Of a DNA stretch of 52,544 bases, positions 4,982-17,300 are shown in pieces. A program made the position numbers and the translations under genes. Origin of the DNA: Girardia tigrina (Eukaryota); NCBI GenBank assembly GCA_001938485.1, contig MQRK01234177.1, positions 12,923-65,466 of the forward strand, given 5' to 3'. The notes beneath the pieces were generated by a model. It saw only the letters and a list, made by a program, of their open reading frames with translations, made no database searches and had not been told where the DNA came from. Position 1 is the stretch's first letter. Every line of letters begins with the position of its first letter.

Positions 4982-7900
4982 GTAAATTTTTATGTCTGTT
5001 TTCAGCTAATAGAAAAAAAATAGGTGGTTTATTTTACGGCTTTATTTCCGTACGTTGTCATAATCATTATGGTCGTCAATGGTTGTTTGCTAAAAGGTTC
5101 CAGAAAAGGAATAGAATATTATATAATTCCAAAATGGGATTCACTTTTAAAAATTCAGGTATTAAATGCATTTAATTATTTGAGTTCGAAAAATAAAAGA
5201 ATGATTTTAACACATGATTTCTAAATTTTTCTTTCATACTTTGTCAAAATAACTTTTTTCATTCAGTGTTGTTTCTCGTTAGCTCTTTAAATTCTTTATT
5301 TTATTAAATTTTTTAAAATAGTTTTAAAAATAAGTCATCCTAGACAAAAATAAATACATATACTATGTAATTATTAAAGTTTTGTAACTCCATCATAAAT
5401 GTTTATCATCTTTCTTGGGAGAAGATATTTAGAAAATTATTTATTACAACTAAAAAAGATAATTTTTATCTTCAACGAATTTACAATGAAATCAATTGCA
5501 TTCTCGATGGAGACATAGTTTACCTCAGAACATAGTCTAATTATGTAGCCAAATTCATATTTGGAAAGTTTGTGCTGAAGATGATCCACATATTGGACGG
5601 CCTTCATATGAAGAAGATGAGAAGATACAAGTTGTTCTTAACGAAGACCCATGGGCTTTAAGAAGAAAAAATTCTGAGAGCATTTTTAATAATAAGACGA
5701 TTATGAGATGACGATTGATTTAAATGGGAAATAGCCAAGATTTCTATATGCAGATCTCATATGCGCTAACCGATGCAACAAGAACGAAAAGAGTTACCAT
5801 GTGTGAAATTTAACAGTAGTACAGCAAATATTTCCTTCTCGCCTAATTACCACTGATGAAAGCTGGACAAATTGACAGAACAGTGGACAACAACGGTACA
5901 AATCTTGGCTAGGTGCTTGAGATCAACAAGTGACAAAAACAAAAATATGCTTACCCTCAAGAAATATCTTGAACTTGAAATGCACTATTCTTATGAATGT
6001 TCTGTTATTTCATAAGACTGTTGTTGCAAATTAATACCGTAACCTATTTCGAAAACTAATTACGGAAGAACTTGAATAATAATTATGTAATAATTGAATA
6101 ATAGCACAAATTTGTAATGACTATCTTTATCCATAGCACGACAACGACATGTCCCATATAACTATCATTATGCGAAACAAGATTACACAGTTTTGTTTGA
6201 AAATTTTCGAACATTCATCGTACTTAAAAGTCTTGCTTATCTCAGATTTTAACCTTTCTTAATCCAAAAATTTTTTTATTACCTCAAACAACGGGCAAAA
6301 TTTAAGTAGACGCAATTCTTCAGGCATAGCATCAACAAGCTACCATGAAGGGAGCAAACAATCTATAAATCTCAATGGTAACTATTTTAAACATTGGTAA
6401 GACGATGATGATTAGATAAATTGTTGCTTTTCACTTTTAATTGACATTTCAGCAGAAATGTTTGAGTCAAACTTGTAAAATATATTTAAGCGGATTTTTC
6501 AATAACAATTAATCTGTCTTAAATAGATTTAAATGATGACTTTATACTCAACTTTAATAAATTGAAAGAGAGACTTGTTGGGATAATAATACATGGATTA
6601 AATGATTTTCTAAGTAATGTCGCACAAGAAACTCACTCGCAATATATTTTAGATTGATCTGATCTACAAACCTTATTCACGTGTCCAGTCAATATTGCAA
6701 CCATTACTCAATCGTCAATGTTATAGAATTTGTTTAAAATAGTATACAATAATTTTTATTATCATAAATAATAATATCATTGAAAAAACTAAATTTTATT
6801 CTTGCAATATATTTCGGTGAATTTTCCACCACCATCAGGTTTAATTAACTACAATTAAATATTAAAATGATTATAAAATCAAGTGATGCAATAGCCAATA
6901 AAATAATCTTAACAAAGTGGAAGAGTGACATGCATGATATCATGCTAATCAAAAATTCTCAATAAGCTGGTTGAGACTGCCGATTGAACATTGATTTTAG
7001 GCCAACGTGACGTAATTAAAAACGCTCCTTAGAATTTAGGTCACGTTGCATTAAAATTAATGTTCATTTGGCAGTCTCAACCAACTTATTGAGAATTTTT
7101 GATTAGCGTTATTTCAAGCAATCGATTACACAATCTTTTTTCTTTTATATACAGGTGAATTAATTATTAATGAGTGACTTGAAGATGTAGGTTGATACGT
7201 TGAAATATATTGTCAATAAATATATTTTTTAATGGATGAGTTTTGGTTTTCATAGAAAATTATCATCCGGATTTTATTTTATCAATAATCATTTTTAAAA
7301 TTATACCATATAGTTACTATATTTTTATACAGAATCTTCAAAACACTGACAAATTAAACTTGTGTGAATCTAGTGGTGTTCTACAATGTGATAAGCATCT
7401 ATTTTCATTTTTAATAATAAAAATATTACTAAATGGAATACTTTATATTTTGACAAATGAAATGTGATTTGAACGTTTTTTTAGGCATGGTCAGATGCAG
7501 CTACTCAGATCTTTTATTCACTCGGAGTAGCATTCGGAGGACTTTTGACAATGTCTAGTTATAATAAATTTCACAACAATTGTTACCGGTATTTCTTAAT
7601 GCTGAAATATATAAATTAATTTGTTTTCAAAATTATTAATTAATTAAAAAATCATATATATATATATATAATGCAAACAAAGGCCATTTTTGATTTTGAA
7701 ATTTATTGACAAGTCATAAAGTGATTAATTACTATTTATATAGTTGAAAACTATTATATCATACGTCACAAAAACATGCTTTTTTCATTAAAAATAGTAT
7801 TTCTTTTAATTTTTTTTCAATGATATTTAAAAAACTTTAATATGATTAGATGAATCACATTGCACGTTTAAGCATGGTTTATGATGCTTTATTAACAATG

Positions 7901-13900: not shown

Positions 13901-14302
13901 AAGAAATGTTTTAAAAATCATGTTTTCAAATCACATGAAGAAATTGAAGAAGCTTGTAAATTCTTTTTTTAATTCTTTATCAACAGGAACATTAAAAAAT
14001 CAACTAGATAAACTTTTTTACTATTGTCAGTTGGCTATTGACAACAATGGTGAATATATTGTTGCTTAAGAAATTTTTAAAATATATTTTTAAATAAATT
14101 TTTCAATTCACTGCATCTATTTTTTTGTTGGTTAATAATATTATTTTTTGGTAAGTTTCAAATTTTATGCTTTGAAATTTTAACACAGTATTTATGACAG
14201 TCTGAATAATATTCAGTCCAAATTTGGTTAAATTTGGTAAAATATTAGTGTGTTTTTAAAGGCCACCTGAGGACTTTTGGGACAGCCTAAGTATATATAA
14301 TA

Positions 14303-14349
<47 letters not shown>

Positions 14350-17300
14350 ATTTGATTAAAGCTTTTTTATATAATTATTGGACATGTTTCGATGTTTACA
14401 TCATCATCAGTAATTTTCGGATGTTTAGTATATGAATATTGAATTGTTTGAATAATGCAATTTTTTTTACAATTTTAATAAATATAATTTACTTTAAAAG
14501 GTGACAAATAAATTATACAATAAGGTATACAAACAAGCAAATAGAACACAACATTAGGGTAACATTAGACAAATTATGTACAGATGCACGAGTTAAAAAA
14601 ACAATTAAAAGAAGAAAATACTGAAGAATACAAACAAATCATTNNNNNNNNNNNNNNNNNNNNNNNNNNNNNNNNNNNNNNNNNNNNNNNNNNNNNNNNN
14701 NNNNNNNNNNNNNNNNNNNNNNNNNNNNNNNNNNNNNNNNNNNNNNNNNNNNNNNNNNNNNNNNNNNNNNNNNNNNNNNNNNNNNNNNNNNNNNNNNNNN
14801 NNNNNNNNNNNNNNNNNNNNNNNNNNNNNNNNNNNNNNNNNNNNNNNNNNNNNNNNNNNNNNNNNNNNNNNNNNNNNNNNNNNNNNNNNNNNNNNNNNNN
14901 NNNNNNNNNNNNNNNNNNNNNNNNNNNNNNNNNNNNNNNNNNNNNNNNNNNNNNNNNNNNNNNNNNNNNNNNNNNNNNNNNNNNNNNNNNNNNNNNNNNN
15001 NNNNNNNNNNNNNNNNNNNNNNNNNNNNNNNNNNNNNNNACTTAAAATTTTTAATTAAAATATTTTTTGCCATTATTACCCAATAATATTTTCATAAATA
15101 ATAATGTTTAATTTATTTGTCACCTTTTAAAGTAAATTATATTTATTAAAATTGTAAACAAAAATTGTATTATTCAAACAATTCAATATTCATTTACTAA
15201 ACATCCAAAAATTGCTGATGATGATATATGTAAACATCGAAACATGTCCAATAATTATATAAAAAAGCTTTAATCAAATTATATTTTCGAAATACTAAAC
15301 TTGCGTTCACAAGACTCAATAATATATAATATAATATATTTTGTAAAAGTGTAATGAATCTCGCAAGCTGAAAAATTGTTTAAAGAGGGACACATGCAGC
15401 CAGCGGTTTGGTCACCCTAGATATGAACGAAAGTCTTTTTCTGAAGATTCTACAACTTTCATCAAAAAATCCTTTATCCTTTCGTCGTCTGGTTTGGTGA
15501 ATGAAATTATAATTAAAATGAAATAAGAATTGTTACATTAATAAATGTTACTACTTAATGGTTCTTTCTGCATCATAACTCAAAAAAAACATTGTTATAT
15601 TTTAAAAATCCATAACTATAAGGTTTTAAATTCATGACTATTGGAAATAAATTATTATTCTTTCACTAAACAGTGAAAAATATTCTTTTAAAGCCGAAAC
15701 GCAAATGGAATTATCTTTAAATTCATACATCTTTTTAAATTGAAAATTGAATACAAAATTTGTTAATATTTTTATGTTCTATCTTAAGATAATATGATTT
15801 TTTATTTTTAACGTAGTCAATATATTTTTGCTGTATGATTGTATTAATTTTAAAAATTTATTTAATTTATATTTAAAATATCTTTACTTATCGTTTATAT
15901 TTAAAAATTTAATGACAATTTATATTGGAATAACTTTTAATAACAATTTAATGTCGTACACTTAATAATACAATATTAAAAGAATTAAAAAATATAACTT
16001 TTTTTCTCATCTTGCTATTTTATCTTTTATTTTATTCATACATTATTGTTTATGGTATACAATAAATTTTTAATTCAAGGAATCAAAAACTTAATGAAAG
16101 ATATCAAAATGATGTTGGGATTTAAGCCAGGATACTTTTGGATTGCCTGTTGGACCGTAATAACTCCACTAATTATAACAGTAAGTTTTTATCTTTTAAT
16201 CGTTTTATAATTATTATAATTATTATAATTATTATTTATAATTAAAAATGAAAATTTATTTTGGTTATTCAGACAATGACACAAATAATAAATCAAATTC
16301 ATTTTAATCCAATAATTTATTGGTTAGATGTTATTTAATATTAGTATATTTCCGTATAGATTGCTAGTTTAGTGCATGTTGTGATCTGATGATGTGATTA
16401 TTATCTCTAAACTTATTTTTTACCCATTTTATATATTCTTTAAAAGTTATTACTAATTAATAAGTTATCAGCTTTTATTTACATCTTAAAAAGTATAAAT
16501 ACTTAAGTATTACACTAATAAAAAATTCTTTTAAGACCACCAAACAATTATCAATAAGAATTAAAATTTGCCAAATTTTAATGAAATTCAAAACTTGAAA
16601 GCCAATTGAAAACGTTTATTAATTTCGACGGTTTAACCTTCATCGTCAAAACAAATGATTTTTCAAACGAAATTTACCTATATAGTGCAGTTAATGATTA
16701 TGCAATCAATACGTCGTAATCAGTACATCATTTAAAAACTCTCAGCAAAGTTGTAGAAAGTGCAGTTTGAACGTTAATTTTAGGATCCAAAGATCTAATA
16801 TATAACGCTTCACATGTCACTCTCTCACAATAATTTTTAAATTGACTTAAAAAAAGTGCACTTAAAGTGCACTCAATTTAAAAATGACTTAAAAAAATGC
16901 ACTTAAAGTGCACTCAATTTAAAAATTATTGTGAGAGAGTGACATGTGAAGCGTTATATATTAGATCTTTGGATCCTAAAATTAACGTTCAAACTGCACT
17001 CTCTACAACTTTGTTGAGAGTTTTTAAATGAGGTACTGATTACGTATTGATTACATAATCATTAACTGCACTATATAAGTAAATTTCGTTTGAGAAATCA
17101 TTTGTTCTGACGATGACGGTTAAACCGTCGAAATTAATAAACGTTTTCAATTGGCTTTCAAGTTTTGATTTTAATAACTTGCCAATTTTATTTCAATTTA
17201 TTTTAATTAAATTATTGAATAATTACTTTTTTAAAAAAATGTCTGTTTGATAGTCCCAAAACCTAATTTTTATTCCCTTATGTGATGCGGTCAATAAGTA

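Follow-up and report, generated by a model that had tools for sequence, protein, structure and literature searches.

A head-to-head pair of truncated Penelope-like element copies, each with a predicted minimal hammerhead, in Girardia tigrina

The stretch of Girardia tigrina DNA analysed here (52,544 nt of contig MQRK01234177.1, hereafter the window) contains an assembly gap flanked by two inverted arms, each with a hammerhead motif. The original prediction read this locus as a single inverted-repeat element, and we asked what the arrangement represents. The inverted layout is present, formed by three collinear blocks in which 14335-14522 is set against 15102-15294 at 92-95% complementarity without gaps. 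Pairwise alignment of the arms gave ~3% substitutions and two indels, one of 4 nt and one of 1 nt. The arms (14340-14522 on the minus strand and 15102-15294 on the plus strand) are ~183-188 nt long, not ~172 bp as first proposed. The motif that had been described, with CTGATGA, GAAA, CATG and TC, was found in both arms, pointing outward. Comparison with the element at 16.6-17.2 kb returned a best E of 0.08 and short AT-rich words only, in agreement with the earlier view that the two are not akin. The boundaries of the repeat are not the ends of an element, as the plus copy reaches 15321, beyond the repeat end. Instead of one element, the locus comprises two 5'-truncated copies placed head to head, the features of which are listed in Table 1.

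Table 1. Features of the head-to-head locus, with positions counted along the window
Feature	Position	Strand	Basis
(TA)n microsatellite, 3' flank of the minus-strand copy	14296..14349		direct reading; perfect TA palindromes listed
Inverted, heavily 5'-truncated PLE family copy, ~183 nt	14340..14522	-	90-94% identity to other family copies
Predicted minimal type-I hammerhead of the inverted copy	14375..14416	-	covariance model R1, 44.4 bits
5' end of the plus copy: last 33 RT codons, stop, 19 nt of 3' region	14525..14643	+	L052 ORF runs into the block
Assembly gap within the plus-strand copy, 396 N	14644..15039		flanks colinear, apparently belonging to a single unit
3' non-coding region of the plus copy, to the short-form end ...TTCGAAATA	15040..15294	+	full-length 95-97% matches at 29 other loci
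Predicted minimal type-I hammerhead: CUGAUGA, extra U, helix II, GAAA, loop CAUG, UC	15209..15254	+	descriptor; R1 53.5 bits
Optional 27-nt tail extension	15295..15321	+	in ~21/29 copies, absent in ~8
TA-rich tract, 3' flank of the plus-strand copy	15322..15343		direct reading

The arm was used to query the 1.43-Gb genome and returned 2,578 first-look candidates, compared with 207 for the block at 14525-14643; the 40 arm candidates that were scored were 95-97% identical. The family is young and high in copy number, and at most of its loci a single arm is found. Homology is lost stepwise upstream of a fixed 3' end (29, 26, 21, 18, 16, 12 and 9 loci), and the number of homologous loci continues to fall further upstream (20, 14, 11, 7, 6, 4 and 3). 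Variable 5' truncation combined with a fixed 3' end is a feature of Penelope-like elements (PLEs). Seen locally, two inverted arms of ~183 nt flank a gap, and the repeat is 95% identical and was assembled from short reads; such a picture could also be taken for a DNA transposon bounded by terminal inverted repeats (TIRs), a MITE, a foldback element or the artefact of a mis-oriented contig. However, most copies have only one arm, the 3' end is fixed and the 5' ends vary, and the plus copy extends 27 nt beyond the repeat. The inverted junction at 14522/14525 also sits in uninterrupted sequence to the left of the gap, and equivalent junctions occur at loci without N (L040, L054 and L020). Shared inverted termini of the kind expected for TIR elements and MITEs were not found, and we give this group of explanations almost no credence.

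Blocks 14525-14643 and 15040-15101, on the two sides of the gap, keep their order and orientation elsewhere in the family, as judged by coordinate comparison only. Seven copies, ungapped or with a different gap, place them 414-436 nt apart, and L057 has a shorter interval of ~247 nt; the gap in the window is entered as 396 N, and continuity across it depends on assembly scaffolding. By this comparison the flanks of the gap appear to be colinear parts of one unit, and the plus copy at 14525-15321 measures ~0.8 kb with the gap included. Upstream of the block, homology within the family extends for more than 1 kb and encodes a reverse transcriptase (RT). The L052 locus has an ORF of 380 aa that runs without a break into block 14525-14643; it matches RVT_1 (E 6e-10) and contains YVDD. 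The L052 RT is 51% identical (E 2e-90) to that of L068, a PLE of the same genome in which RVT_1 is followed by GIY-YIG on one strand. L033, L039, L004 and L044 each have the RT region, block B, block C and the arm in one contiguous stretch. The plus copy of the window retains the end of this ORF at 14526-14621 and the stop codon at 14622-14624, a TGA that 32 of 33 copies share. With both copies 5'-truncated, the locus has no intact ORF left. The RT is of the PLE type by RVT_1, YVDD and similarity to the L068 RT; these sequence similarities assign the window's family to the true PLEs. The earlier proposal of an independent Penelope-related family with the same inverted architecture is supported, and is strengthened by the RT of the longer copies and by the published PLE insertion signatures.

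The size of the plus copy raised the alternative of a short non-autonomous hammerhead retroposon of ~0.8 kb, such as an animal retrozyme or a SINE-like PLE hitch-hiker. Block 14525-14643 seemed to start at a fixed base in all matches, and units of 800-835 bp were measurable. In addition, the window's family has no TATA box upstream of the hammerhead, where five other lineages have TATAWA at -34 to -41. The sequence upstream of 14525 is, however, conserved in most other loci, so the plus copy is truncated at 14525, and the upstream RT is contiguous with the arm. Head-to-tail tandem arms were absent within 1.5 kb in 29 loci. Retrozymes resemble this family in their type-I hammerhead, whose helix III is weak, and in being related to PLE terminal regions (Cervera and de la Pena 2020; Li, Clavereau and Pollet 2026 preprint, 10.64898/2026.07.22.740005). 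They are short, non-coding units in head-to-tail tandem (10.64898/2026.07.22.740005), whereas the window's family is dispersed, is not tandem and has long copies that encode an RT. Barring misassembly of the RT-bearing loci, a non-autonomous unit of ~0.8 kb is refuted by the upstream flank comparison together with the RT ORF, and a retroposon of this type is a highly improbable explanation of the locus.

Within the PLE pair, the plus copy keeps the end of the RT and the 3' region and the minus copy keeps the last ~183 nt, so each ends in the 3' module of the family. This module consists, in order, of the minimal hammerhead, 46 nt, the optional 27-nt tail (in the plus copy) and TA repeats. The long and short 3' ends of the family are 27 nt apart, and an optional tail of 30-40 bp is a PLE feature that this extension matches, if just below the quoted range (PMC8557442). 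The minus copy lacks the tail and is shorter than both usual forms, terminating at ...AATTATATT with (AT)n immediately after. All three 3' ends observed in the family fall at ATA or TAT, and a TA-rich tract adjoins the 3' end in 23 of 29 copies. The GIY-YIG-bearing PLE family of the same genome likewise has two alternative ends, ~33 nt apart. Poseidon PAc of Anolis carolinensis is similar in having two alternative 3' ends split by a tail, an AT-rich target and a hammerhead ~50-90 nt upstream of the 3' end (PMC11167929). In contrast to the ATA/TAT ends seen here, which match the TA target, the initiation site of PAc lacks homology to its target (PMC11167929).

The two hammerhead motifs were then characterised. 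In the right copy CUGAUGA begins at 15215 and cleavage is predicted between 15248 and 15249; in the left copy it is predicted between 14381 and 14380, 3' of C17 (14381). Both have the catalytic boxes CUGANGA and GAAA with a U-H cleavage site, and a helix III of one pair closed by a palindromic loop, as in PLE minimal hammerheads, where such a loop would permit dimer formation. A full descriptor matched twice in the window and not at all in 200 dinucleotide-preserving shuffles. The left copy fails a strict descriptor at helix I only, its first helix I pair being an A.C mismatch, and its loop 2 is 4 nt shorter; in helix II of the right copy, an A replaces the G that is usual in the family. In covariance model R1, built on ten lineages, the left copy scored with E about 1e-10, the model having excluded this copy itself but included its close relatives. 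The Rfam hammerhead families (type I, II, III, HH9 and HH10) gave no match at the gathering score or at E<=10. Those models look for a helix III stem, which minimal hammerheads do not have, so the missing match does not weigh against the motif.

Comparison among lineages provided further support for the motif. Across loci selected by protein match (112 kb), 30 core-only matches (19 distinct) were found against 0.76 expected, nearly all of them with pairing. At least eight lineages have the hammerhead format in common with helices that differ, and five palindromic loops occur among them, namely CAUG in the window's family and CGCG, UUAA, CUAG and UAUA in others. Both arms of the window have an extra U, and an extra nucleotide is present in 10 of 10 aligned lineages, with the G10.1-C11.1 pair being G-C in nine of the ten and G-U in one. 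Helices I and II show compensatory changes across lineages (85% of cells paired, against 60% when shuffled and 18-46% when slid), a count that is partly circular because the descriptor that picked the sequences required some pairing. The changes are backed independently by the core-only matches and by a sub-lineage at L021 with a rebuilt helix II. Minimum-energy folding of the canonical copy recovered helices I and II, weakly (-7.4 kcal/mol), and energy-based dimer folding preferred another palindrome, AAAGCUUU, over helix III. These results place the motif beyond chance expectation, as a predicted ribozyme. As a separate matter, we considered whether the hammerhead AUG (A9-U-G10.1) is the element start codon behind a TATA box. 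This was rejected for the window's family, where the TATA box is absent and the AUG opens a frame of 13 codons only; in PAc, the ORF does start inside the hammerhead (PMC11167929).

Metazoan PLEs, including Cercyon of Schistosoma mansoni, have minimal hammerheads in which one base ahead of stem II is unpaired, and opposite-strand pairs of motifs separated by 100-700 bp have been reported among them (PMC4209133). The window motifs resemble them in CUGANGA and GAAA, the unpaired base between A9 and G10.1, the G10.1-C11.1 pair, the one-pair helix III with a palindromic loop and the short helix I (PMC4209133). They differ in a helix II of 4-5 bp, compared with the 7-8 bp typical of schistosome families (PMC4209133), and with the loop CAUG and a GUC site the sequence is a separate lineage.

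How did the two copies come to lie head to head? The presence of two outward hammerheads follows from this geometry, each motif being part of a 3'-terminal module. Such pairs are frequent. Among 30 loci with block B, about one third have an inverted copy upstream, at a distance of 0 to ~550 nt, and the truncation points of these partners vary (the window, L040, L054, L036, L053, L020, L017 and others). Adjacent inverted, 5'-truncated partial copies are a further PLE feature. The 5' ends abut, 0-5 nt apart in the window and directly joined in L040. In the tight pair at L020 the arms are mutual best matches (98.9%, rank 0 of 41 for both), and among 42 family members the closest relative of the left arm of the window is the right arm, although the left arm is no closer to the right arm than many other copies are. 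At four independent loci, the plus copy is cut at the same palindromic hexamer, GTATAC (14525 in the window), with a different inverted partner each time. This hexamer may mark a preferred joining site of two cDNAs produced by double-strand-primed insertion.

These pairs could have arisen by independent insertion of a second family copy beside an older one. Since the family inserts into TA tracts and every copy carries such a tract with it, clustering is expected, and tail-to-tail neighbouring copies do exist at L010 and L021. The arms of the more distant head-to-head pairs at L033 and L051 are no more alike than random members, and the divergence between the arms of the window could also be read in this way. 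In contrast, the copies meet at their 5' ends, a point that offers no TA tract as a target, and the abutting ends and nearest-relative arms of the tight pairs are not accounted for. The frequency of inverted partners also far exceeds the chance rate of ~0.1-0.2% for an unrelated neighbour within 600 bp, itself a rough estimate from ~2,600 copies in 1.43 Gb. We consider independent insertion decidedly unlikely. The original prediction held that the differences between the arms argue against a simple duplication; the differences are real, but taken alone they are compatible with a common origin, the right arm being closest to the left. With ~3% substitutions, two indels and many equally close copies, an origin in a single event is favoured, not proven. 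Collectively, the data suggest that the locus very probably holds two 5'-truncated copies of one abundant PLE family, joined head to head inside (TA)n, with a single insertion as the favoured origin.

The insertion architecture of PLEs was reportedly set out by Evgen'ev and Arkhipova in 2005. PLEs are described with an inverted 5'-truncated copy next to the 5' end, a tail of 30-40 bp, (TA)n targets and assembly problems (PMC8557442, Craig et al. 2021). The window agrees in its 5' truncation, inverted partner at the 5' end, tail of about 30 bp, (TA)n target and terminal hammerhead, and in the tendency to break short-read assemblies (PMC8557442). Unlike in that description, both partners are truncated and the locus has no direct pseudo-LTR; none was seen for the window's family. 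A PLE protein cleaves and extends both DNA strands, and reverse transcription starts at two internal sites bracketing the tail (PMC11167929, Frangieh et al. 2024). A PAc-type protein that nicks and extends both strands would give head-to-head copies (PMC11167929). In the window, the PLE protein would have nicked both strands of the TA tract, reverse transcription would have been primed on both nicked strands to give two cDNAs, and these would have been joined at their 5' ends to produce the pair. Judging from the literature, the hammerhead would belong to the terminal region recognised by the RT and might cleave weakly, as a dimer or with the help of protein. Published PLE minimal hammerheads cleave poorly in vitro (PMC4209133), and in Anolis no RNA-seq ends fall at the hammerhead site (PMC11167929). 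Being on opposite strands, the two hammerheads of the window cannot form one ribozyme dimer in a single transcript.

We also asked whether the family encodes an endonuclease. No GIY-YIG was found beside a family copy in 147 scored matches (150 of 2,832 candidates having been scored). By the geometry of L068, the position of any GIY-YIG domain would match the gap of the window, and the conserved RT stop lies only ~0.63 kb before the hammerhead. One reading is that this is an RT-only PLE family which, if there is no endonuclease downstream, spread by means of the GIY-YIG enzyme of sister families; we regard this as unlikely. If it were true, an endonuclease-less family would have spread to thousands of internal (TA)n sites. 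PLEs that lack an endonuclease are not known to occur away from chromosome ends. A role of GTATAC at 14525 as a splice donor between RT and endonuclease frames was discarded, as the protein similarity to L068 is unbroken across this point. No autonomous partner with the family's tail was present among 20 further loci from other GIY-YIG subgroups, where four other hammerhead lineages were found.

The pair in the window is a further defunct insertion of a high-copy retrotransposon, and its form has been published since 2005-2014; the head-to-head PLE layout with hammerheads has itself been reported (Cervera and de la Pena 2014; Craig 2021; Frangieh 2024). Alone it is of little import, with modest value as clean genomic material on the mechanism of PLE insertion. 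The family is useful in being young, with thousands of copies and three discrete 3' ends beside TA-repeat targets, and in its frequent head-to-head pairs, mutually nearest arms in tight pairs and one recurring joining point. These footprints fit the nicking and extension of two strands by PLE protein in vitro (PMC11167929), and a genome-wide survey of them could put that model to the test. For annotation, hammerhead palindromes of this type should be masked as PLE stubs and not entered as new RNA genes or TIR elements. The family was also present in assembled RNA contigs of two leaf-litter metatranscriptome libraries, with the unique flank devoid of coverage. Separately, L089 has an older relative of the tail next to a GIY-YIG relic and part of a mariner transposase; this sequence has only five matches in the genome, mostly duplicates.

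The inverted repeat of the Girardia tigrina window (G+C 27.6%; eukaryotic assembly of 1.43 Gb in 255,254 contigs) is real. The left arm, or minus copy, and the right arm, part of the plus copy, align in three collinear blocks, 14335-14522 against 15102-15294, at 92-95% complementarity. The claimed differences between the arms are also present, as a few substitutions, one 4-nt indel and one 1-nt indel in the pairwise alignment. The other palindrome at 16.6-17.2 kb had been described as unlike this one, and no significant similarity between the two was detected (best E 0.08). No gap interrupts the sequence at the head-to-head junction (14522/14525), which is therefore independent of the scaffold join. 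Continuity across the assembly gap inside the plus copy was checked using the coordinates of the flanking stretches in other copies of the family. The stretches 14525-14643 and 15040-15101 have the same order and orientation in those copies, and their spacing is 414-436 nt in loci L039, L033, L051, L037, L044, L049 and L056, fetched from the same genome, and 396 N in the window. The spacing of about 247 nt in locus L057 is probably due to a deletion.

Each arm had been predicted to carry an outward-pointing hammerhead ribozyme motif, and both do: CUGAUGA, U, helix II, GAAA, CAUG and UC are followed by CAAU, which pairs with the AUUG preceding the core. A descriptor combining the core with helices I and II of 3 bp or more and a palindromic loop 3 matched the window twice and 200 dinucleotide-preserving shuffles not at all. 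An Rfam search of the window returned no hammerhead at gathering score, nor at E<=10. Using a covariance model from ten lineages, the right hammerhead scored 53.5 bits and the left 44.4 bits (E about 1e-10), the left being itself outside the model with close relatives inside it. The descriptor result against shuffles, the covariance-model scores and the lack of significant similarity between the two window elements show that the motif did not arise by chance. Both hammerheads are slightly damaged. In the left one, the first pair of helix I is an A.C mismatch and the loop has lost 4 nt; in the right one, helix II carries A instead of the G that most family contigs have at 15226. Since the two lie on opposite strands, the dimer needed by such motifs cannot form; their pairing at the repeat is a by-product of the head-to-head geometry. 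In a sub-lineage of the family (L021:8-53 plus a second copy), compensating changes have remade helix II from GAUGU...ACAUC to GAUUUUU...AAAAAUC, with core, loop 3 and helix I unchanged.

Features of the studied repeat and of a third palindrome in the window
Feature	Position	Strand	Remarks
Plus-strand hammerhead	CUGAUGA start 15215	+	predicted cleavage between 15248 and 15249
Minus-strand hammerhead	14416 to 14375	-	predicted cleavage between 14381 and 14380
Plus copy	truncated at 14525	+	last 33 reverse transcriptase (RT) codons kept; stop 14622-14624
Inverted arms of third stub	6931-7015 and 7036-7120		86% complementary, 20 nt apart
Outward-facing hammerhead relic of third stub	6844-6800	-	core CUGAUGG, loop UAUA; E 0.07
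Outward-facing hammerhead relic of third stub	7173-7217	+	25.6 bits, E 5e-5

The arm gave 2,578 first-look candidates in the genome; identity was 95-97% in the 40 scored. Most loci contain one arm, not two, and upstream of the fixed end the number of loci still aligning falls stepwise (29, 26, 21, 18, 16, 12, 9). Such stepwise loss is what reverse transcription leaves behind when it starts at a fixed 3' end and the 5' truncation point varies, and is not the mark of a transposon with inverted termini. A non-autonomous unit of ~0.8 kb starting at 14525 was first suggested by the identical start base in 40/40 scored matches to block 14525-14643, but was overturned by conserved sequence upstream of 14525 in most other loci. 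Homology upstream of this block runs for more than 1 kb, with loci again dropping stepwise (20, 14, 11, 7, 6, 4, 3). In locus L052, an ORF of 380 aa, read in the element's orientation, enters the equivalent block and stops inside it. This ORF matches RVT_1 (E 6e-10), contains YVDD and shares 51% identity (E 2e-90) with the RT ORF of locus L068, which is followed by a GIY-YIG domain on the same strand. L033, L039, L004 and L044 each contain an unbroken run of RT region, block, 3' region and arm. Collectively, the RT ORF reaching the block, its match in L068 and the contiguity with the arm show that the family is a Penelope-like element (PLE) in its own right. The original prediction, which had inferred a Penelope-related family and proposed a search with the arm for an autonomous partner, is confirmed in its observation and supported in its interpretation, the RT being found within the arm's own family. 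The architecture and the ribozyme type have already been published.

Of 33 copies, 32 have TGA as the stop codon equivalent to that of the plus copy. A GIY-YIG domain, if placed as in L068, would begin about 326 nt past the equivalent of 14525, inside the stretch matching the gap. The genome yielded 2,832 GIY-YIG (PF01541) candidates; 150 of them were scored and 147 lay above the cut-off, and no copy of the studied family adjoins any of these 147. The 3' end of the family differs from the end of the inverted repeat: about 21 of 29 copies extend 27 nt beyond ...TTCGAAATA (window 15295-15321) and about 8 stop there. It directly meets TA-rich sequence in 23 of 29 copies, and the left copy in the window ends 9 nt earlier than the short form, directly at (AT)n.

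About a third of the 30 loci holding block 14525-14643 have an inverted copy upstream, with different truncation points and at distances of 0, 0, 32, 68, 136, about 390 and about 545 nt. With about 2,600 copies spread over 1.43 Gb, the chance of an unrelated copy within 600 bp is roughly estimated at 0.1-0.2%. The arms of locus L020 are mutual closest relatives (98.9%, rank 0 of 41 both ways). The closest relative of the left arm in the window is the right arm (96.6%, rank 0 of 41), but the converse is not true, and in the more distant pairs of L033 and L051 the identity of the partners is not special. Purified PLE protein cuts and extends both strands, and reverse transcription begins at two internal sites bracketing the tail (PMC11167929); the head-to-head layout observed here fits this cleavage and extension of both strands. 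The window pair may have formed in a single event on a TA tract, in which both strands read alike and reverse transcription would have been primed on both nicks.

In four independent loci (the window, L040, L054 and L017), the plus copy breaks off at one shared base inside the RT ORF, where the palindromic hexamer GTATAC begins (window 14525), and each is joined to a different, differently truncated inverted partner. GTATAC as a splice donor was rejected. In locus L050, about 40 nt upstream of the equivalent block, a snap-back junction fuses the RT ORF's end to the reverse complement of that same end, making a perfect local palindrome.

The GIY-YIG-bearing elements of the genome have hammerheads of the same format downstream of the endonuclease, each with an extra nucleotide ahead of helix II and a palindromic loop 3 (CGCG, UUAA, CUAG or UAUA). 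About 100 nt separate them from the 3' end, which again exists in a short and a long form, differing by about 33 nt, and borders on (TA)n. The hammerhead at window 16588-17168 is of the UUAA type (helix II GACGG/CCGUC, loop UUAA, site UA). As this type adjoins GIY-YIG matches in five fetched loci (L075, L078, L079, L084, L087), the window element is the tail of another GIY-YIG-bearing PLE family. In 112 kb of loci picked by protein match alone, 30 matches to the core only (19 of them distinct) were counted where 0.76 would be expected, and nearly all pair or sit one mutation from a pairing form. Across the ten-lineage alignment every helix shows compensatory changes, and 85% of cells pair, shuffles reaching 60% and slid partners 18-46%, a count that is partly circular because the descriptor picking the sequences required some pairing. 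The four hallmarks of minimal hammerheads described by Cervera and de la Pena (PMC4209133), namely covarying families, a base between 9 and 10.1, a G10.1-C11.1 pair and a palindromic 15.2-16.2, are all found here. TATAWA lies 34-41 nt ahead of hammerhead position C3 in 5/7 other lineages (L064, L066, L069-L072, L075, L083, L040, L086) and is absent 34-41 nt ahead of the core in the studied family. The AUG of A9-U-G10.1 opens a frame of only 13 codons in the studied family, and in the CGCG-loop copies among these loci, which have U at position 11.1, the frame closes after only 4 codons (MPKW), so that this AUG cannot be the start codon in those particular copies.

At L066:1376-1755, the (TA)n tract ending a GIY-YIG-bearing PLE copy has received an insertion of a head-to-head pair whose arms are very short and whose family is related (84% identity). 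An older, degraded relative of the studied family's hammerhead and tail at L089:1040-3190 retains the motif TTCACAAGACTCA and adjoins a GIY-YIG relic and a fragment of a mariner-type transposase (PF01359, E 5e-20); the genome contains only 5 matches to this sequence.

The studied family is present at 90-99% identity over window 15040-15400 in the assembled contigs of two leaf-litter metatranscriptome libraries (X5, X7), which do not cover the window's unique flank. This hints at the habitat of the organism or a close relative. Toward the 3' end, depth in X5/X7 reaches about four times its level at the hammerhead. Window 6800-7217 holds a third PLE stub, also head to head but older, with TATATA about 32 nt ahead of its plus-strand relic.
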